Assembly (NCBI GenBank): GCA_038496445.1
Contig: JALMLS010000448.1
Location: 277,296-341,295 of the forward strand
Length of the DNA stretch: 64,000 nucleotides
Direction of reading: 5' to 3'
From: Trichosphaerium sp. ATCC 40318
Taxonomy: Eukaryota > Protista > Tubulinea
Numbering within the stretch: position 1 is the first letter of the stretch; each line of letters begins with the position of its first letter. The notes below the pieces were generated by a model that had not been told where the DNA came from, made no database searches, and worked only from the letters and a program-made list of their open reading frames with translations. This document shows positions 13,964 through 50,162 of the stretch, in pieces. The position numbers were made by a program, and so were the translations under genes.

Positions 13964-16900
13964 ATGTTTGATGCCGCACGGGCATCATTCGCTGGTACAA
14001 AGACCAAGGTGTTCAGGGAGATCCAGATCCCTGTTGGTGTCACTTCACCCAAACTCCAAGAATATTCACTCCCACAGCCACGAGATTATAATATTGAGCC
14101 AATTGCTACTGTAGCAGAAAAAGCGGGTGGATTTACGTTTGCTCAAGGCAATCGGTATATAATATGGTACTGACGCTATTGCGCGGCCAGAAGTAACAAA
14201 AAATAGGCGGGTAAGTGGACAAACGCTCCAGCTAGAAGAACTGTACGAAAATCATGATCTACACAACAGCGCTGTATCGTTGAGGTTCCCCGGTGCGTCA
14301 ATACTAGGTTTTAGCACGCTTTCTGTTTATTTTTATTAGAGACGTTAGTTGGTTCAGTAGCTATATCAGAGGATCCCACAAGTGCGCACGAAGGTACAAT
14401 TGTAACAGTAGTAGCCTTCAGTGGCACAATATACCACTTTCGATTCTATCACCCCAAAGTACGCTAAAACATACACAACGCGACAACTCAACAAAATATA
14501 GTCTATGGAAGAAAAACATTCGAGAGACGCAACACCTGACTCAATATTTGCGTATATACGTTCATCAGACTTTGCAGTACGTATTCTATGCTTTATTTAA
14601 CAAAATAAAACTCTTTTTTTCAAATTTTAGCGCGAGCTTTTCAAAAAAAAATCGAAAAAATTCAAAAACTCATTTATACTAACTCGTAATCTACTGTAGC
14701 AATCACTGGTAAGGCGAGATGCATTAAATGGTGCTAGAGCAGTTAGTATTGCAAGCTATTCAATGTATTCTGTCGCTGTAAGCGCTAGTAATGGGTAAGA
14801 TGTTTTTCTTTTGTTTTTTTTTCTTTTGTTTTTTTTTTTCAGTTGTTGGCTTTCTATTATTTATCTAATACTGCCCCTAAGGTCGGTGTTTATCATGAAG
14901 TTTCAAGTACGAGATAGTGAAAGCTTATCGTGCAATACAAAGGCTGAACTTAAGCAATCAATCCTCACATCATTGTTTCAACGCCGTTCGCCTATAAAAG
15001 ATATGAAGATCCATGAGTGTACAACAATGCGTACTAAATTAATCGTAACACTGGATGAAAACCATAAACTTTGTATTTGGGATGCAGAAAGAAGAGTAAG
15101 TGAAGACCAACATCATTCTTTGAAATGTCAAGTTCTGATTTTTTTATTTTTTTCTTAAAGGCTTGCATTACTTCAAAAGTCATTCAATGGGATTCATACG
15201 GTTCTGGTAAAGACTTACCAAAGGCACAAGGTATTAGATAATTTTTGGTGTAATTTATACTTATCACGTGCCATACACGTGAGAAAAAAGAGAATCAAAT
15301 TTAGGTGTGGTAAATACTGACGCTGTTATTGTAGAAATCTTGGATAGCAGACTAGGCTTGTATTCGTTTGACAGCAACCTTTTCTGTTTGGTTGTTTATT
15401 TATGTCGTGAAGATTCTTCCCAATTTCAAATATACAGATGTGCTATTAATAATAACCAATTAAATGCACAAATTCATGCAGTATCATATTACGAACCAGA
15501 CAGGCTTGTAGATTTTGCAGTAGATGATGGATTCTTATGGGCAATGTGGTGTGAAAAGTACGTACAAAATTGTGGAAGTTACATATCTCAAAAAACTAAT
15601 ATTTCTTGTCTCTGTAGGCACGCTGGAAATACTCTGTTCTATAACTTGAAGAGACTACATTTTGAATTATCTGATCCTATCCAAAAGATCGATTCTATGG
15701 ATTGTGTTGCACACAAAGCTGTTTTAAACGTAAGTACCCTGTAATTTGATAGTATCTAGCTTTTTGTTGATGCTGACTCACGCCTGTTTAGAATTGGCAT
15801 GGTGCTTCTTTATCAGAGCCTAGTGAAGTAGTAGAGCTTTTAGACGCATTATACGACGCTGAGCATCCTCCAGAAGATATGTTTTTAGAGGTAGAATATT
15901 AGCTGTTTATTAAGTATTAATTCCAACCATCAAGGCAATTTTTCATCCAAATCGCTTCTCTAAAGAATGCATATCTATCGCTTTATATGAATATAATGGT
16001 GTTAATATGAGTGGTGCCACTTTATACATGCTACGCGAAGCTGCTGTACAAGCAGTAGCTAACAGAGTACGAAACAGCCGTCAGAAAAAATACAAAAACA
16101 GGCGATGCTTTTGTTCGTTATTCGAACAGTTGCACTTCTTCTCCGATTTCTCTCTTACACTCAACTCTAATATATTTTTCTGTAGGTAGCAGTAGCAACA
16201 GAAATGGGTGATTACGTTACAGGCTATGATGCATTCTTTAATCAATGGGCATCATTCTTACAATGCTGCTTAACTGCTTACCTTAAGGAATCACAACCTC
16301 TTGGTATCTTTTGTTCGGGATCAGTTGGACCAGTTATTGTTAGACAAGGAGCTCTATCTTTTTTGAGAAACTGTAATACCTTGGAGGGATTTTATATTCA
16401 ATTCTATTGGAATAGCAATGGTGGGTTTAGTAGCGTTTCAACTGTTGAGAGATATATGCTTTCTCATGGATATGCTCATACTGAGCATATGGATTTACTT
16501 CAGCTCTTGACTTGCGCACGTGTGATTCATAGCCAGGTACCATATTTTGTGGTCAATGACGTTTGAAAGCTTGCTTACACATGTGTAGGTTGGTCATGTT
16601 GGTATTGCTGCGTTTGAAGAAGATATGTTGTATCTTGGAGTAAGAGATGCAATAGTTAGGCCTGTAACACAACTTGTGTGTCCATCACAGTACGTCAATT
16701 AGTATTTTTTATAGGGATGGCTTCTTACTTAAACTTGTTTTAGAGCAGACGCTGGTGATGAAAAAGGTGAACATGCTAGAGAACCTTTCTTGCCGCCTTT
16801 TATACGTAAATTCAAGTCTATAAAAAGACCAATTGAAACTCTACGACTCATTCTTAATCTACTGGAGGACTTTGAACTCAACGGAGAGTATGCGTTTCTA

Positions 16901-19900
16901 ACCATCTTGGAAAAAGTAAATTCGCGTTAATATCTTCCTTTTGACACAAACGTGATAGTTTCCAACAGTGTTGTTAATAGCCTTGTTTTTTAGGGAACTG
17001 AAAAACTTTGGTAATCATCCTTCAACTGCAAGCTTTTGTGATCATTGCATATCTCATGGTGTCCGTCAAATACTTCGGTCACGTTATGTGCTTAGTCTTA
17101 GTGTTGCACTTCTTATTTACCTATTGGCTCGTATTCGATTAGTGGTACCAAAAAAAAAGTTACTATAAGACATAAAGTCTAACTATTATGTTTTACAGAG
17201 TGGACTTAGACTTAATGAATATAAAGTGGTTATGAATGAATTAGAACCAAAAGTATCAAAACTGTTGCGTACATTCTATGTTCTCAATTGGTTATCAAAG
17301 CAACGTATTGAAAATACAACAATAGAGTACGTTCCTTATTCTCTACTTTTTTCCAGGTTAAAGACATTTGTTAACCTTCATTTCAAGCTTTGATAATTTG
17401 GCTACAATGACGAATAGACACTTAACAATGACTGGTACACGTACTAATGGTATTCAATCGTCTGCAAAGACTGATGGCATGGATTTCTTGCATCATTACT
17501 TCTTGAAGAGGAATAAAGCAGTAAGGCTTAAAATACCAGAGGATGAACAAAAACAATTTCGTTCATCCATGCAACTCATAGCACGAATGCAAGTAAAAGT
17601 ATTATTTGCTTATCACAACAGCAATACATCAGTTATTGAGCATTTCAGTGATAGCAAACAATTCACACTCATGCATGTACGTCATTTTTTTTAACAACTG
17701 TTAAAGCTTTAAAAAAAAAAACCCATACTCACAGAAGATTCTTTAGGATTTTATGTCATTGCTAGCAGACACAACTGGTTTTGGGTGGCATTATCTTGGT
17801 GAAAGTTATCTTCATTTACGGATGTATGCTAAAGCATTTGATTGCTTTGTTAAGGCGTCATGGGATGTTGGTGCGTTTTAAGAACTTATTTTTGTCAATA
17901 ATTATTTCAGCCAAATAGTAATGACTTCTCTGTAGAGAATGGACGTCCTGAGCTTTATCGTTTCCTACTCGATCGTGGTTATAAACCTAGAGCAACTAAT
18001 ATATCAATGGGAAAGGCTTTAAACGTACGATACCAGAGCATGAAAACAACGTCTTTGGATTCCTTTTTTTATTTCATATCTTTATTACAAACAACTATTA
18101 TTCTTTAATCAATAGTATGTCATTATTGTCAATAACTTATCTATTGTTCTTAGATTATTTTGAATCACAAGGGGACAGATATTATTGATGAGACGTTACC
18201 AAAACATCGTGGTGTTCCATTGAGAAGAGCAAGATATACATACCTTAAACATTACTGGTATGAGGTCATTAATTTATTCGCAAGCGCAGAACAGTATTCT
18301 TTTGCTGTTCAAGCAGCTCATCGTGCGTTGATGGCCACAGACCCAAAAGACGAAGTTGCACTTGTACGCTATATATTTTTTCTTATTTTTTTCTTTCTTT
18401 TTCCTTGTACCACTTATCAAAAACTAACAAATACTGTTTTTTAGACGCAACTGTGGACTATCATATTTTTACGACAACTGGAACTTGGAGAATATGATGA
18501 CGCATACATTGCAATTAATGCAAACAAAGCAATGTACGGGTTAATGATAACATTGAATGATGCACATCATTCAACTTAAGCACGAATCCAATTTTTTTGT
18601 TTGCCAAAAGTCAACGCAAATGTTTAACTTGAATGATACGCACAATAACCTACAAGTAGATGAGTGTAATTTCTTTTTATTAATTTTTATTGTATAGGTG
18701 TGCAGAAAGGCTTAGACGATTCCTAGTTGTGATGGCTGAGAAAGGAGAATGGAGAAAGATGATAAGGTACCCATTTTTGGGTATGGAAGATCAAGTACAC
18801 AAAGAGCTATTGATGAGGTACAATAAGACACATAAAATTGATTTCCATCTCATTTTCCTCTTAGAAGCCGTAACAGCGATGTAAGCGAGCGACCTAATTT
18901 TTACCATATTCTATACTCCTTTCATTCCGTAAGAGGAAACTACAGACAAGGTACAGTACAAATAATAATATTGAAAGACGATTGCGGGAACTACGCTGAA
19001 AACTTTCTTTTTGTACTTGCTTTTCTAAAGATGATTTAGCTGCTTCGGCTATGTATGAATATGCCGATAGGTGCTCTATTGAGACACATATGTTGGGAAT
19101 AGAATCCATGGAACGTCAGTCACAAGTACGTTAACTTTAAAATAGTTTTCTAGTTTGGAAAGCTACTCACTGGTTTATGTCTTTATTTCTCACATCCTCC
19201 TAGGGTCTTGTTTCTGCTATTAGCGCTTTATCACTTGCAAGAGATGATTTTGCATATGTACTGATGAGACCAAGAGATACACTTATAATGAAGCGACCTG
19301 TCTCGCCAAAGCGTAAATACTACGCTGGCAAAGAGTACATGGCCGAATTAGATGCAACAAAATGTACGAAAACAATTCCGCTCACTACTAGGGTTGTATC
19401 GCATATGTGGTTTACTTATCCACCATTTCTTGTAGTTACTCCTGGCGTTGTTGTTATCACTATTGATGAGATACGGCGGAAGCAACTTATTGTTAGTTGT
19501 AGTATAAAACTTGCAAAAAAAAATCTAAAGCAAGATGAAGACTCTCGTGCGTGTTCCCTTTATTTTTTCTTTCTTATCAAACTCTAATAAGTATCTTACG
19601 CTGTTATGTAGCATCTATTCTGGGTAATGACAACCCATTGCATTTGTGTGATAAATTGCTTGAGCAAGGATTCATTGATGAAGCTTTTTCTATGGGCAAG
19701 TTGTTTAAGTTTAATCATGATGAAATGGCAAAGATATTCGTATATATGACGAATATTTGCTTGGAGCTTGATGGAGTTGATCTTGAGGCAATAGAATCTC
19801 CTTGGGCTCTTCGATTAGGTATGTATTTTAGCTATTTTTTGACTAAGCACGAGTCTCTTTCCCTTTGTTTTGGAGTTTCACTTTATTTCTTTTGTACTCT

Positions 19901-20620
19901 CGCTTCTGTGATTATTAACGGTTTTCGTTAGCTCGTATATACCAAAAACCTAGTGTGGTAGCTTGGATGAGGTTGAGAAAGTATTTAGAAGACTATAATT
20001 CTCAGTACACAAACTTTCAGTGCGTCCTTTATTTACAACTTTTTCTGAAGTTTTACTTGGAATTCTTTTGTTTTGTTCGTGTTCGTTTCATTTTATGGCT
20101 CTAACTGATTTATAGCTACCACTTGGTAGCCGCAAAGAGGATACTTACAGCAGCTCCTGATACAAGATTAAAGCCATGGTTAATGAATGCGTTCAAACGT
20201 GAAGGTTCAGAAGATAAATCACATTTACTTATATCTCTTCTCATACAATTCGAGTCATACGAAGAAGCCTGTAGGCTTGGTATATATATGTTCCAAAATG
20301 CCAGAGAGGTACTTACAAATTTTGACATACACACATGCATACTAGCCAAGAATATTACGAAAAAGGGAAAAAAGACAGGCTCGAAGCCTTGTTTCTTCAT
20401 TTTTTCTTCTTTTTTTTTTTATCTGATCCATTTATTTTCTTAGGCTCTAAGTGATTCTAAGACGACTTTCATATCTTATAATGTCGTTGATAATATGGAG
20501 AAACGTATCAATACATTCATGAGAAATAATACCTCTGATCAAGCAAGAAAGGATATACTAGAAAAAGATATTTGGCCTGATTACAAAGCCGCAAGAGATG
20601 CTTACTTCAGGTCCTTGTAG
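13964..20620 (+). CDS. NUP160: Nuclear pore complex protein Nup160/Nup120 (many introns)
   Basis: N-terminal NRYIIW|RVSGQTLQLEEL..HDLHNSAVSLRFP, HKLCIWD, AIFHPNRFSKECI, LELGEYDDAYIAI, LRRFLVVMAE, AASAMYEYA and KPWL motifs, in the order and length typical of Nup160. Confidence 0.85.
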
Positions 20621-20969
20621 GGCATTCAAACAAGACTGTTGATTCAGGTGTATGATTATCCACTTGGGGTAGTTAGTAGTAACCCAACCAATAGTACAAA
20701 AAACAAAACGTTGAAAAAAACGAAGGAGCATTTAGAACCCACGTGCACCTCTTGCTGTAATTGATCTAGTGTAAGATAAAAAAATTTGATGAAAAAGTGC
20801 TGTCTTAAAAGCTTGAGGACGGGTTCATGTTGACTAGGTTTGGGCTTATAATACATAGCCATTGGACAATAGTCGAGGTTGTTCTTATCTGACTAATCCC
20901 GTATGGCTTGTTAAGTATTGACAGCTTAAGCGAATGCAAAAAAGCTGTTATCAATAATACGAACTCTAC

Positions 20970-23900
20970 ATGCAGCGGCAGTATACGTGGATTGTTTTTC
21001 TGCTCGCTGTGAGTATTTTTGAGGGCTTAAAGGCGCAATGTATGTTTAAAGACAATAAACCAACATTGGTTCCATTAGGTGAGGCGTGTGGTCTAATATT
21101 AAGCGTACTAATACCTTTTAAGAATCAAAGTTTATTCAAGACCGATTCCAGAACGTAATAGCCCTTTATAACAATGGTACGCATACAAAACTATCGTAAA
21201 ACCTAATAAGCACAAAGCCACATTCGTTTACAATGGTTATTTCGGTTGTAACACAACACGCTTCTATTCTCCCATAATAAGCGTCGCTAGAGTGAATGTA
21301 CGTTTCAAAGCTCCTTTAACCATTAATTGGGATGAATACGTGCTAACTGGGGCGTCAGCAAGACGCTTTCTTTTTTACATTCCGTATCTGTTGAAATTTG
21401 GGAATGGGAGGATGACGTAAAACAACTTGTGCAAAAGTCAACTGTGAAATGGAGTAGTATTATGAATGGAACATCATACCACTTTGATTCAATTGTAGAA
21501 GCATGGAACGATACAGTCGTGATTAATTTATTCACACGTGCTGTTTGTTTTAATGTTTCGGGTGGTACTATTAACTCATGGCATTTTATTGAATATGAAG
21601 AAGAAGGATTTGTTATTAAAAACATACGATATGAGTATGAACTTGAGCGTCTATGGGTACGTTGTGTGTTAGAACTTCTATTTCATTTGCACTTTAAAAA
21701 ATATCGATTCATTAATCTGACTTAGTTGATTGGTGTTAAAAATGACGAGGAACTGGGTATTTTATCAATGTCTAAATCGTTGGATGGTCAATGGAATATA
21801 TCGTGGTCCTACGAAATTGAGATAGTTGAAGGATACTCTATTCCACTAAACTTTACAGTCTATGCCAGTACGGTTTATATGATGCTTTTTTTTGTTTGTT
21901 TTTTTTTACTTTTTGGGTCTCTCACCCACACAACTCAAAGGTTTTCTCATGCTTTTGTTTATTTCCATCATTGATACCATGGTTGTTGTTGCGTTTATGA
22001 AAGCGTAGTGCTTTTGTAAGTGTGGTTTCAGAACCAACATGTTTACTCGATACTAAAAAAGCACAACTACTTTTTCAATATATCTATATTCTTTACGTCT
22101 CATATTTATTTGTTTTAGAGAGAATGTATCGTAAATATGCACATCTAATTATAAATTCTTATGACGTAATTACCATAAAGCCATTTTATATTTGTCTTGA
22201 TACAGCACTTGAATGCTTTAATCTAGATGAATATGCAAATTTTATTCTTTTTGACAGCCCGGATCAGTACATTGGATATTATTGTGACTTACACCTACCT
22301 TGTAGTATGTATCAAAATAGTGTACGTTCAACTAGTTTATTCAATCTTAAGGCTAACAAGTTTTTGATTAACAGAATGAGTATTGCTTGTATTGCTGGCT
22401 AAACAGTACAACAAACAACCAAATACAACTTGTTCAGATGGGTGTTTATTCACTAGGGAGAGCATTTTATCCTTCTCATGATACCCTTGGTCCTCGTCCT
22501 ATACAGCGTGTTGTACAAGCAAACGGCAGTATATATATTGGAAGTTCAGTAGATGGATCGTTAAGCATTGAGAAAGGACCAAAACCCAAAGTAGAGCACG
22601 TGCTATTTTCTAGTAACAGTGTTGATTAACTTACTGTTTTACAATTAGTGTTGGTTTCAATCAACAGTCGCATTATGCAGGAAATGATGTTTTTATAGCT
22701 TCTTGTGGACAAGGAAAAGAGGTTGATAGTACTAGACTAAACCTTATGCCTTGCACTTTCTGCAAACAAGGTAAGAAAAACGAAATTTACTCTGTGTTTT
22801 TTTGAAATCTGTTTTGTTTTGTCTCGTCAGACAGTTTTGCTTGATTACTTCCAAGTACCATAAACAATATTGTGTGTCTTTTATAAACATCATACTTCAG
22901 CTGAAACACGTTGTGTTATTGAAAGGTTTCTTATTTTTTTCTAGGTTATTACAAAAACGAAACTATGTCATCGTGTGCGCTTTGTACACCAAAAAAAAAG
23001 AAAACATGTCCACCTGGATCTATAATGAATTTTGATGAAGAAACTTTAGCAGAATCAGCACAGTCACTGAGGTTCCCTTTTACAGAGTTGACACCAAAGT
23101 CAGTACAAAAGCAATTCCTCGATCAACTCTTTAACAAGAACGGACCTGCTACTTGGATGACAATAGCAAATTTTTCTCTCATTTTGCTGTTGCTGTTGAC
23201 TGTACTTGTATGTACCAAAAATGGTAATACATGGCTATTAGATAAGCTCAAGTCTATGGATATGAATAAAACACCACTGATTGTTAAAGGTAAGTATCAA
23301 ACAAAAGGTAACTTGATCGGAGGTTTGATTACAATATGTACCGTTGGTTTTTGTATTATTGGTATTGTGTGCATGCTGTACATCTACTTTGACTTTGAAA
23401 GAGAACCAATGATCATTGGAGCAGAGTCTATAAGGCCATTGAATGTGTTACGAGAAACATCAAGTGAGTTGTTGGCATCAGCGCCTCATAATGTTTTAGA
23501 TTTTTACAAACACCTCCAAAGGTAAGCTTCTCAACATGTTTCTGAACAATAACTCTTTTACCAATAGTAATTCACAAACTGAGGTCACAATTGAGTGGGT
23601 CGGTATGAATGTTACATATTGTAACAAGTCAGACCGTAGTTGGTATTCTTTTAATACTAACATGAAGAGTTTACACCACAACTTTGACACATACGCAGAA
23701 AACACAAACGTTACACAAGGAATAATATCCTTTCAAAGCTTTAAAGATGGTACAAATATGAGTTTTTCATTTCTTTCAACAGAGTGTTGGTCTCCCAATT
23801 TTGTTGCCATCAAGATAAACTTTACAACAAAAGGTACATTTAAGGTTGATTACTGTTTTGGTTATGACAGTGCTAATGTTTTCTTTTCTACAAGGTTCAC

Positions 23901-46020: not shown

Positions 46021-46441
46021 GAGTACTTTTTATAGTAATCTGCTATAGCCACAAGCGTAAAGGATGCACGGAGAAGATTAAGAAAACGCAAGGCTTCAGT
46101 TCCGTTAACTGACAGCGAGAGAAAAAGGCGGAAGAGCAAGAAAAGTAAAGGTGAGTAAACACACAAATCTTTAGATATTTAATATCTCTTCAGCCCTAAG
46201 TCGAAAAGAATAATGCTAACGTAAATGTAACTCAACACATTTTCAGTTTGTTCATCATTGGCATTGTTTTTCACGAACGTTGTTTTGCAAAGGAGACAAG
46301 AAATAAACATGTAATACTTTAATACAACTGATTATAAAAAAACTTTTGGACTTTTTATTATACACCTCCGCGTCCAGTACGGGGTACAGAAATAGTTGGG
46401 GATACATACTATTTTACATGGTAAAATTGTGTTATATTTTT

Positions 46442-49400
46442 TCAGTTTGAAACGTGTTGTTCTGAGGAAGCACTTCCTGTTTTGATTTGAATATCAACTT
46501 GTTCCTTTTCTGGTTGAAATCTTTGTCTTAACAAGTCAACGACATTAGGGAAAGCAAACCACTCTGGAATATCTTCACCGCCTTTAAGACGGCGTCTGAA
46601 TTCAGTTCCTGAGAGTTTAAGAAGTTTGAGTCCTAGAAAATAATTGTAAGTCACGTGATCAGAGTTTGAAGAAAAAAGTTTTTGTACCTTTTTCTTTTGC
46701 TTCTTCTTTTGGTACATATCCCATTTCTTCTGTGTATACCATCTCTGCAGAAGGTACAACCTCGATACCGAGCTCTTTCTCGTATTTTTTAGCGAAATCT
46801 TGAGCGTCGAATGGACCATAGAAGTCGTCACCAGTACGGGTACTCTTGGTGCCGGCCATATCGCGTCCAATGATAAAGTGAGTTGCTCCAAAGTTTTTAC
46901 GAAGGACCATATGTTGAATGGCTTCACGAGGACCTAGATAGGCGTAAGAAATAGTTTGAGGAGTATGTAAAAAATTGAACGTACCAGCCATCATCATGGA
47001 GTAAGGCAAGTAAGCCCACATGAGTCTGTTATCATTGAGTTCTTCTTGCAATACTTCATAAGTTTGGTGACGTTGGAATCCATCAATATCACCAGGTTGT
47101 GTAGGACCACAAGTAGGGTGAACCAAAATGGTTGACTAAAAGAAATAAATAAGAAACTGTTTAGCAAGTTATTTTGGCGTACATCTGGGATAGTCTTTTG
47201 TGCTTGAAGCAATAATTGGTAATGCGCTTTGTGGATTGGGTTACGACTAAAAGTAGTGTCAATAACGATAACATGGTTGCGAAAGAGAGTAGTGGCGTAC
47301 CATTGGAAGGCAATAACTTTCTTATCACTTGGAAGATTCTTTCTTAGCTCTCTTGGAGATGCGTATTGGATTCCATCTGTTCTTTGAGGTGCTTCGAGAC
47401 CTACGATATCACCACCAATGTAGAATTTACCCTTGTTGTTAAAGAGTTCATAGACACCAGGATGATCTGGAGACTCAGTTCTGAATATCTCTTGTGCCTC
47501 TTCGAATTTGTTTGGAGCGTAAACATCTTGAACTTTGAGAACAGCGACGTCTTTACCCTTGTATGTAAGCAGTACACTTTGTCCTTCTTTAATATCGGTG
47601 CGGTTGGTATCAAGGGTAATAGGAATTGCCCAGATTTGTTGCTCTGGAAGGCGCATATCTTTGACAACGCTCGAGTATTCCTTGTTGGTCATGAAACCAG
47701 TCAAAGGAGAAAATCCGCCCTGTGTTCAAAATGTTAGGGAAATTCACACTAGCATTCTAGTTGTATCACTATTTTTTTTGGGTGTTTTTTGAAAATCGTA
47801 CGTTACATAGAAGCTCAACATCACATGCTTGACGTTCATTCAATTCAATAGAAGTTGACGTTTCTTTAACGATAGCTTGTTTCTTCTCTTCATTTTTTTC
47901 GTACAAATCGACGAGGATACCGCCATGTGGTGCACCTAATAATCATGTTAAGATTTTAATTTTTTTTTGGGTATCACGTGCGGCGTAATAATTATTCCGT
48001 TGTTTACAAAATAACGTACGTTCATGTTTTGCGCGAGTGTGGATACCACATTCAGTATTAGCAAGGCGAACGAAGCGACCTGAAGAAAAAAATGTTAGCA
48101 GTTGGAAATTTCTTATTTAGTGATAGAGAAAAGTAAACGTTTTCTTACCATCTCTTTCGGTTTCGTGGGCTTTTACTGGGACTGATGTATGAACGTCGCC
48201 GAAACTCTTCCATAAGTACACATGCTTTGCTTGAGGTTCGCCAGCGCGTTCTTGCTCGGTAGCACGCCAGTAAGGTTTTCCAAGGTCAACTTTTGTCCAT
48301 GGTTGGTTTGGTAAGTGTCTTTCAAGAGCGTCAATCTCTTCATTTGCTCTGACTATTTTTACAAAAAAGTAAGCCGAAAAGTTCATCTTACATTAACTAC
48401 AATGTTAAAGGATTTGATAAAAGTAAACTGTAACTGCATGCAAAGATTACGTAAAAAAATGTCATGTGAAAAGTAATAAAAAAACGTGCACTGTTCCCGC
48501 TAGAAATTATGCAAAAAAAAACAGAAAAAAAGAACTGAAGTTTTTACGTACAGATGACGTTGTGGCGCTTGTTAAAAGGTACGTCGTATTTATCAACGTA
48601 TGTGAGAACGTCTTGCCAGCTCCATGCAGCAAGAGGGTTGAATGTTTGCTTTGTAGGCTCAAATACATCAAGATTGACACGAGCATGCGCTTGATCCATA
48701 CGACGCCCAGTAATCAAGATTTCTTTGCCTTGTGCATCAAGACCACGGTTGAAAGGCTCTACTTTTGAGTGGAAATCAAAATCAGCGTGGTTCATGGCGT
48801 TATCTCCATCAGCGTAGCCGAATTTCTTGATGAAATCTTCCTACACATAAACGTCAACAGATTGAAAAAAGATTCAAACAAGAAATTTCTAACTGTCAAA
48901 ATAATTTACGGGTTTTACGCAATTTCTCCGTAGTATGCGCGCTATGTACGTACTTGTGTCTCACATCCTTCTGGAAGGTATTTAGGTATTGTACGACCGT
49001 ATTTCTGCTCCATAGCGGTCCAAACAGCGTGGGTTTCTGGAAACAAGTGCAAAGTATCCACACCAATGACTTTGAAACCTTCCCACACTTTCGGTGTTGT
49101 GCGATGTATCAAGTCAACAATAGCATTGTCGCTTACAAGGAAAGCAGATGCAAGTACAGCACCTACGAGGTAATGTTAAATAAATGTAAGATGAACAGAA
49201 CATTCTTTGCAGTGCAGACTTGAAAGTTCAGAAAAGTTTGAAAACAATTCACGTGTTGCGAAAAGGTTTAACAGGAAAAGACGTTGTTTGCATCGCTTTC
49301 CCCCAAAAGAAGACGGAAGTGAAAAGTTAAAAAAATTATTTGTGTACCTTTGCCATCTGCAGGGAGATGCTCATTGACGTCTTTTGCGAACTTGTCAATG

Positions 49401-49510
49401 AGATTTGTTGTATTATCAGCATGAACAGCGTAAGTTCTTTTTGTAGAATTTTTAGAAACAAACTTCTTTTGAGCTGCAGCTCTTGTTGTAGTTGTTGCGT
49501 ATCGTAACAT
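46442..49510 (-). CDS. Fusion protein: mitochondrial-type presequence + APS/PAPS reductase (CysH family, Fe-S-free) + ATP sulfurylase (Sat family)
   Basis: Reductase motifs VDTLHLFPET, KVEPF, ITGRRMDQ..R, NPLAAWS, SFGDVHTS, ERDGRF..TECGIH. Joined in frame via TRAKHER to APHGG, ACDVELL..GGFSPLTGFM, AFQCRNPIHKAH, HPTCGPTQ, GPREAIQH...RKNFGATHFIIGRDMAG, LSGTEFRRRL. Confidence 0.92.
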
Positions 49511-50162
49511 TTGCTGATAAGAGTGGTATCTAAAACATCAAAAAGTAAGCTAACATAGAAAGCGTACAAAAAGGTTTCTAATGCGCTGACACGTGGATTT
49601 GAAGCGTAAAACAGCGTATAGAAAAGTCACGGGAACATAAAACAACGAAAAAGAAAAGGCCTTTTTGTAAATAACATAGCGTAGATGACCTTGAATGGTA
49701 TCTAATTATTGCGTACATGATGCTCTTGATGTGTGGATGCGTTGCAAATGACGGTGGAGGTATTTTATCCGCAGGTAAGTGTAAAAATGTGTACCACGGG
49801 AAAAAAAAAATGTCTTAAAAAGGAAGTTTTCTACACCACGCTCTCTTTACATCTTTTTAACGGCTGCAAAATGGTTCATAAACAAACCCTAGTGAGGCTA
49901 ATACACATGAAAACCTCTATGAAAATGACAAGGTGATGTTTGTGCGTAACAAGAGCTATATAGAGGCGTAATGAGGCGAAACGTTGAGAAAAAAACACAA
50001 AACGTTTCTGACGAATAGTCATGCTCCTTTTTTTCCACCGTTTTGTGCGTCAGTGCGTTCAAAACCGCGTGGTAAAAACTTGTATGAGAAAACTGCGCAA
50101 AAAACTCTTTTTGGGCGGAAATTTCTTGTCTGTTCTTCACAACGCGCTCAGTACACTGAAAT

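Follow-up and report, generated by a model that had tools for sequence, protein, structure and literature searches.

Fused and Free-Standing Enzymes of Sulfate Reduction

Fusions of adenosine 5'-phosphosulfate (APS) reductase (APR) with ATP sulfurylase (ATPS) are known from several eukaryotes. An ATPS-APR fusion was found in the dinoflagellate Heterocapsa; its reductase took a basal position in the APR-B clade, and extracts of a dinoflagellate having the fused enzyme showed high APS reductase activity (Patron et al., 2008; PMC2275785). The fusion with APR at the N-terminus has been reported in Amphidinium, Chromera, and the non-photosynthetic Capsaspora (Prioretti et al., 2014; PMC4220642), so the architecture is already known, also outside algae. 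Here we describe a gene located on the minus strand, at 49510–46442, of a 64,000-nucleotide (nt) stretch of DNA from the amoeba Trichosphaerium sp. ATCC 40318 (contig JALMLS010000448.1, positions 277,296–341,295; this whole stretch is called the window and its own numbering is used below). Its product joins the published and widespread APR-ATPS fusion family as a new member from an amoeba. It is a single polypeptide, in which both catalytic motif sets are intact and ligands of an iron-sulfur cluster are missing. We consider it highly probable that it is one bifunctional, APS-using enzyme of this family, whose N-terminal extension is most likely a mitochondrial presequence.

The window protein shares the domain order and the three Pfam domains with the fusions of dinoflagellates (Heterocapsa, Amphidinium, Alexandrium, Polarella, among others), Chromera velia, and Capsaspora owczarzaki (PMC2275785, PMC4220642). 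With these fusions it also has in common the linker (HTR, 5–6 residues, and PHGG) and an insert of ~45 residues in the reductase. It differs from them in that its host is an amoeba and in forming its own clade with the EukProt transcriptome proteins P0241 and P0257; moreover, its reductase part has 2 Cys as compared to 4–7 in the named relatives. Sulfurylase is joined to the next APS-using enzyme also in fungal ATPS with the APS-kinase-like domain and in animal PAPS synthase (PAPS, 3'-phosphoadenosine 5'-phosphosulfate), but these have a kinase or kinase-like partner, whereas the window protein has a reductase partner and no PF01583.

The initial annotation of this locus, which was made from the sequence alone, had pointed to a dinoflagellate APR-ATPS fusion and to mitochondrial sulfate assimilation in Euglena, and is correct on both (PMC2275785). 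The fusion that it proposed stands, but its novelty was overstated, since the same layout, APR(N)-ATPS(C), has been published (PMC4220642) and is abundant in databases (50–66% identity), including proteins of Creolimax and a colponemid.

Gene Structure and Transcript Support

The gene model was made by three-frame reading of the minus strand at 46400–49560, with open segments joined at GT..AG boundaries. It has 11 coding exons totalling 2130 nt, encodes 709 residues, and ends with a TGA stop at 46442–46444. The introns are 47–199 nt long, and most of them have GTACG at the 5' end. The reading frame across the domain junction is NTECGIHTRAKHERAPHGGILVDLY, which is stop-free and reproduces exactly the junction given in the initial annotation.

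Contigs of four public runs were aligned to 46300–49700. The X1 contig (2275 nt, study P1) lacks all 10 coding introns at the model coordinates; the X8 contig (2142 nt, study P5) also lacks all 10, and has 0 mismatches to the window. Record 5 of X3 (364 nt, study P2) spans the introns 48148–48080 and 48019–47936, which flank exon 5, the second being the 84-nt intron of the domain junction (47936–48019). X5, the only run recorded as RNA-Seq, supports three other introns. Contigs without introns cannot derive from the genomic locus and are therefore cDNA-derived. Thus, across 47930–48080, the region in which the initial annotation placed the cDNA check, contigs from three studies (X1, X3, X8) skip 48019–47936 in frame. 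One mRNA carries both domains, as had been claimed, and the junction-crossing contigs contradict two separate transcripts.

The other strains' contigs differ from the window at 18 positions, and all 18 differences are synonymous in the model frame. They range from codon 150 to codon 681 and fall in both domains, with three in the exon 4 insert. Purifying selection therefore acts on both halves of the protein as read in the model frame.

The Reductase Domain

Searches of Pfam, NCBIfam, and PDB were run exon by exon, and the relatives P0007 and P0241 then served as proxy queries. The PAPS_reduct domain (PF01507) was found in exons 2–3, and TIGR02057 and NF002537 were the NCBIfam matches for the reductase. 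Exon 1 (49348–49510; joint 49160/49346, cut +2, in X1, X5, and X8) gave nothing in the exon-wise Pfam scan. Exon 2 (48954–49162; PF01507, contig joints) has the region of the nucleotide-binding loop with DTLHLFPET, and exon 3 (48552–48840; PF01507, 1.5e-11) has the reductase core with the TGRR arginine loop. The best solved match of both exons is 4BWV (30 and 46.5 bits, 4.2e-11 for exon 3), which scores above yeast and other PAPS reductases and is APR-B of Physcomitrella, a cluster-free APS reductase (PMC8173546).

Iron-sulfur enzymes have CCxxRK and GCxPCT motifs, and the cluster-free ones have Y/FxxxxK and GDxxxT/S (PMC2275785, Figure 4 legend). In the alignment, the window protein has FDFHSK (residues 145–150, 48763–48780), with FD 145–146 at the position of the CC pair, in place of CCxxRK, and GDVHTS (residues 272–277, 48183–48200) in place of GCxPCT, which are the APR-B signatures. 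The two Cys pairs of iron-sulfur APS reductases are not present in the reductase part. Its only cysteines are Cys121 and the catalytic Cys299, and therefore no [4Fe-4S] cluster can be bound. The tail motifs R-x-G-R-(W/F) and ECG(L/I)H, which position the substrate (PMC8173546), are both kept, as RDGRF and ECGIH (residues 298–302, 48039–48053), in exon 5 (48020–48079; model and alignment), where the linker also starts. By its motifs and closest structure, the reductase is of the APR-B type. The cluster-free reductase with internal catalytic ECGIH had been correctly recognized in the initial annotation.

Physcomitrella patens APR-B likewise has no Cys pairs, and has Y/FxxxxK, GDxxxT/S, and the ECG(I/L)H tail. 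However, it is a free-standing enzyme, crystallized as 283 residues, whereas the catalytic tail of the window protein runs into the sulfurylase. A plant-type C-terminal thioredoxin-like domain is also missing; no exon gave a match to a thioredoxin family, and the sulfurylase is found at this place instead.

Exon 4 (48149–48352; spliced contigs, family alignment) starts with the insert of ~45 residues (~48215–48352), located between the reductase core and GDxxxT/S. Searched by itself, this exon had no match in Pfam, NCBIfam, or PDB. All aligned members of the fusion family have the insert in conserved form, and the alignment with moss APR-B (4BWV) has no space for it. An alternative acceptor within exon 4, which would drop the insert, was rejected, as the full exon is present in the contigs and the family members share the insert. 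The insert was also observed in P0024 and P0025, relatives having no ATPS. In P0025 (1422 residues, from a metagenome) the insert-bearing, cluster-free reductase is joined to a MET10-like sulfite reductase flavoprotein (POR_N, FAD_binding_1, and NAD_binding_1) with no sulfurylase; no mention of such a fusion was found in the cited literature on cluster-free reductases and fusions.

The Sulfurylase Domain and the Linker

The C-terminal part has the PUA_2 domain (PF14306) in exons 6–7 and the ATP-sulfurylase domain (PF01747) in exons 8–11, and the corresponding NCBIfam model is TIGR00339. Exon 6 (47802–47935; PF14306, alignment) encodes the canonical sulfurylase N-terminus (APHGG...), the start of the PUA-like domain, and ACDVELL (residue 345). 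Exon 7 (47301–47719) continues the PUA-like domain with GGFSPLTGFM (PF14306, 8.6e-36; TIGR00339, 1.6e-37), and matches yeast ATP sulfurylase, the nearest solved sulfurylase (1r6x, 1.2e-27). The active-site motif QCRNPIHKAH (residue 492) is in exon 8 (47183–47246; model, Pfam, alignment), HPTCGPTQPGD (residue 520) in exon 9 (46985–47135; PF01747, 4.2e-11; alignment), and GPREA and GRDMAG in exon 10 (46688–46933; PF01747, 8.5e-25; alignment). Exon 11 (46442–46632; PF01747, 1.4e-07; model) ends with the stop codon. The protein has the motifs QxRNPxHxxH, HPxxGP, GPREA, and GRDxAG and the PUA-like domain, as expected of the sopT-type ATP sulfurylases; HPTCGPTQPGD and GRDMAG are common to the dinoflagellate half of the fusion family. 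The Cys-bearing motifs, which the initial annotation had assigned to a marine cyanobacterial/algal type, likewise occur in that half. An APS kinase or kinase-like domain (PF01583) was not found in any exon, and the protein ends ~25 residues past the sulfurylase domain.

The linker between ECGIH and the canonical sulfurylase start (PHGG) has only 8 residues. In all 11 sequences aligned, it consists of HTR, 5–6 residues, and PHGG, and the full set of catalytic motifs in the two domains is likewise conserved.

Relatives

A full HMMER scan with exon 3 gave 26 cluster representatives below 1e-10, which included fusion proteins of 674–764 residues matched at residues ~115–215. A word-index search with two proxy relatives listed well over a hundred proteins of 650–700 residues having PF01507, PF14306, and PF01747. 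Many of the fusion relatives come from marine metatranscriptomes, and those named are from Alexandrium, Togula, Gambierdiscus, Polarella, Symbiodinium, Chromera, a colponemid (Colp12), and Creolimax.

The joined 709-residue model was used in local BLAST against the fetched proteins, in a MAFFT alignment, and in a tree. Over the full length, identity is 66% to P0257, 60% to P0241, and 53–56% to dinoflagellate proteins; matches to Alexandrium, Togula, Gambierdiscus, Polarella, and further members cover ~650–690 residues with 53–60% identity. In the maximum-likelihood tree of 42 sequences, the window protein groups with P0241 and P0257 with support of 100/100. This clade lies within the half that contains the dinoflagellates, and Chromera, Colp12, Creolimax, and P0021 are in the other half.

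The Sulfate Assimilation Pathway in the Genome

The assembly (G000, 70 Mb, 642 contigs) was searched with profiles, exon by exon, in six frames. The window gene is its sole ATP sulfurylase and its sole sulfonucleotide reductase. A second match to PF01507 (contig C49) was rejected as a reductase, since it is an FAD synthase having the GYTSIG...PNP motif. No APS kinase was found in the 70-Mb assembly; PF01583 had no match, and the best matches of TIGR00455 had E-values of 0.2–0.5. The weak matches on contigs C8 and C31 were rejected by eye, since they belong to a generic P-loop kinase and to a gluconokinase-like gene. It is possible that this organism forms no PAPS, and sulfation that depends on PAPS would then be excluded.

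Because the genome shows no way to make PAPS, the reductase would have to use APS if the pathway works; among the arguments for APS specificity this is the strongest, although it is one from absence. The fusion to the enzyme that makes APS points the same way. APS rather than PAPS is thus the likely substrate, as the initial annotation supposed.

For the hemoprotein of assimilatory sulfite reductase, a single gene was found, which is of the fungal MET5 type (PFOR-like, flavodoxin-like, NIR_SIR), large, and multi-exon, on the minus strand of contig C100 (~16385–22150; L008, L010). CysK-like and CBS-like genes are present, and the serine acetyltransferase match is weak. The cystathionine-beta-synthase-like gene (contig C123, ~102500–104100, minus strand; L028) has an N-terminal CPH motif of the heme-binding type.

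The N-Terminal Extension

Translation starts at Met1 (49510), because the 92 nt of contig-supported, spliced 5' untranslated region (5'UTR) contain no in-frame ATG. Beyond 49529, the loose ends of the X1 and X8 contigs match the sequence from 49717 onward, which defines a 5'UTR exon at 49717–49789, where 49789 is the supported extent and not necessarily the 5' limit. The same loose ends and the sequence define a 5'UTR intron of 187 nt (49530–49716, GTACGC...TTTTAG), located 19 nt upstream of the start codon.

The conserved part of the family begins with a helix (..I..F..V..HLP.DGKG). The window protein is longer by 35 residues (49406–49510, including the start codon) and P0241 by ~44, and Colp12, P0298, P0235, and P0226 begin at the helix with no extension. 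The extension has a charge of +7, with 7 K/R and 8 S/T in the first 28 residues, its first acidic residue is 32, and RTYA occurs at residues 25–28; the basic and hydroxylated composition and the R-x-Y-A motif are as initially described. For organism-specific controls, we inspected by eye the first exons of three genes of this genome whose products are certainly mitochondrial. The leader of HSP60 starts with ML and ends with ..KPYA ahead of the conserved GKD, that of IscU starts with ML and ends with ..RNY ahead of the conserved HERV, and that of ATP synthase beta starts with ML and has ..RRYP.. inside. All three are rich in T/K/R/N, acid-free over ~30–35 residues, and have the R/K-x-Y motif, resembling the extension of the fusion. 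Among further controls, malate dehydrogenase gave an internal exon only, and the SOD matches no clear first exon. Composition, homologue alignment, and own-genome leaders make the extension a candidate for a cleavable presequence, and we favor, with moderate confidence, the import of the fusion into mitochondria.

Mitochondrial sulfate reduction, as proposed in the initial annotation, stands in part. The extension is real when compared to homologues and is like the leaders of HSP60, IscU, and ATP synthase beta, but the claim for the whole pathway is not borne out, since the starts of the sulfite reductase hemoprotein and CysK-like genes, whose targeting it also raised, show no leader. Presequences on sulfite reductase and cysteine synthase, which mark the fully mitochondrial pathway of Euglena, were not found at the predicted gene starts. 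In Euglena gracilis, sulfurylase and APS reductase also have presequences of the mitochondrial type, but they are separate, plastid-derived iron-sulfur enzymes, and sulfite reductase is mitochondrial too (PMC2275785), whereas the window gene encodes a fused, cluster-free enzyme, and no leader is seen on the sulfite reductase. A comparable case would be the ATP sulfurylase of Entamoeba and other Archamoebae, amoebozoans that have it in their mitosomes, which are mitochondrion-derived organelles (PMC9796589, PMC7465240, PMC10711303). There, APS kinase makes PAPS for sulfation with no reductase, whereas the genome of the window has no detectable APS kinase and the sulfurylase is fused to a reductase.

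The extensions of P0175, P0190, P0202, P0188, P0007, and others of the dinoflagellate type are Arg-rich and acid-poor, and end with motifs of the R-F-S/R-G-F type. They look more like mitochondrial presequences than the signal-plus-transit leaders of plastid proteins. The Heterocapsa fusion enzyme is listed in the literature as plastidial.

Proposed Mechanism and Alternative Explanations

By analogy with the family, the C-terminal ATP sulfurylase would convert sulfate and ATP to APS and PPi. Cys299 of ECGIH would then attack the sulfur of APS with the formation of enzyme S-sulfocysteine, from which a thioredoxin-type dithiol would free sulfite (PMC8173546). The mobile catalytic tail of free-standing reductases would here be the tether of 8 residues to the sulfurylase N-terminus, and because this tail is the interdomain linker, lid closure and thioredoxin access would have to occur next to the sulfurylase. 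The fusion may hold APS, the product of an unfavourable reaction, beside its consumer, and the tether may favor hand-over; true channelling of APS may result from this arrangement. If the enzyme is mitochondrial, sulfite would have to exit the organelle, because the sulfite reductase hemoprotein and the CysK-like synthase look cytosolic. An aerobic amoeba reducing sulfate to sulfite in mitochondria on one fused enzyme, with sulfite reduction and cysteine synthesis in the cytosol, is a tentative picture, to which we give somewhat less than an even chance.

Several observations weigh against parts of this reading. There are no kinetic data or enzyme assay for any member of the fusion family (PMC4220642). 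The preference for APS or PAPS is unreadable from sequence alone, and the absence of APS kinase comes from exon-wise six-frame searches of an assembly in 642 contigs. The targeting controls are three positives, judged by eye. The sulfite reductase hemoprotein begins with MAEQGVKFIE in an A-rich start context, with no acceptor site and no leader, and the CysK-like gene begins directly at the conserved domain, both starts being read from DNA; these leaderless genes would fit a cytosolic pathway better.

That the halves are two proteins, arising through separate transcripts or internal initiation, and the fusion an artefact of assembly or annotation, is hardly credible. Single contigs of three studies cross the junction intron in frame, the linker is conserved across the family in both length and sequence, and the same layout recurs in many independent transcriptome proteins (the well over a hundred listed); no support for separate proteins or an artefact was found. 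It is very improbable, if less so, that the reductase half is a PAPS reductase of the MET16/CysH type, with no direct hand-over of APS between the domains. The top NCBIfam profile is indeed TIGR02057 (PAPS_reductase), and cluster-free enzymes are classically PAPS-dependent (PMC2275785). However, APS kinase is undetectable in the genome, the best solved relative, APR-B, reduces APS with no cluster, and the dinoflagellate extracts mentioned above were highly active as APS reductase (PMC2275785).

The location of the enzyme is less settled. The bifunctional enzyme could be cytosolic, with an extension that is no functional import signal and the whole pathway cytosolic, the state of fungi and other eukaryotes having no plastid, a less likely reading that still deserves weight. 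It agrees with the missing leaders of sulfite reductase hemoprotein and the CysK-like gene, with the entire absence of the extension in several homologues, and with the cytosolic sulfate reduction of plastid-less eukaryotes (PMC2275785). It is opposed by the extension itself, which has 35 residues, a charge of +7, and no acidic residue before 32, is very similar to the leaders of HSP60, IscU, and ATP synthase beta, all bona fide mitochondrial, and has a similar counterpart in the closest relative P0241. Furthermore, the next in-frame Met falls within the domain, so no intact shorter form is possible. It is also conceivable, albeit improbable, that the sulfite from a mitochondrial enzyme goes in whole or in part to an organellar use other than cysteine, e.g., the formation of sulfonate or thiosulfate. 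The apparent mismatch between the predicted site of the enzyme and that of sulfite reductase and CysK is the one point for this, and against it stands that the genome has an assimilatory sulfite reductase and that its sole sulfurylase and reductase are those of the window gene.

The preferred reading, a bifunctional APS-using enzyme with a probable presequence, has several implications. The locus provides a transcript-verified fusion of APR-B and ATP sulfurylase in a plastid-less amoeba with no APS kinase detectable in its genome, and gives independent genomic support for APS use by cluster-free reductases, which is still called unproven in the literature. If the split between compartments is true, the steps of assimilation would be divided between organelle and cytosol, and Euglena would be joined by a second mitochondrial case; a whole branch of the fusion family might be mitochondrial, given the look of many dinoflagellate extensions. 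If import is real, the toxic intermediate sulfite would arise and be reduced in different compartments, which raises the question of sulfate and sulfite carriers, and the site of action of the dinoflagellate enzymes would be worth re-examination.

Other Features of the Locus

The 3'UTR extends to the contig limits (46355–46441, minus strand; the last supported position is 46355 in X8 and 46372 in X1). The matching runs carry four organism labels from five studies, with 95–100% identity, and could represent strains, synonyms, or co-cultures. For the exon 6/7 intron (47716–47801; joint 47716/47799), X1, X3, and X5 place the ends shifted by 2–3 nt, as GC..CG with the canonical length. This is probably an alignment shift from a strain variant beside the splice site, and not a different intron.

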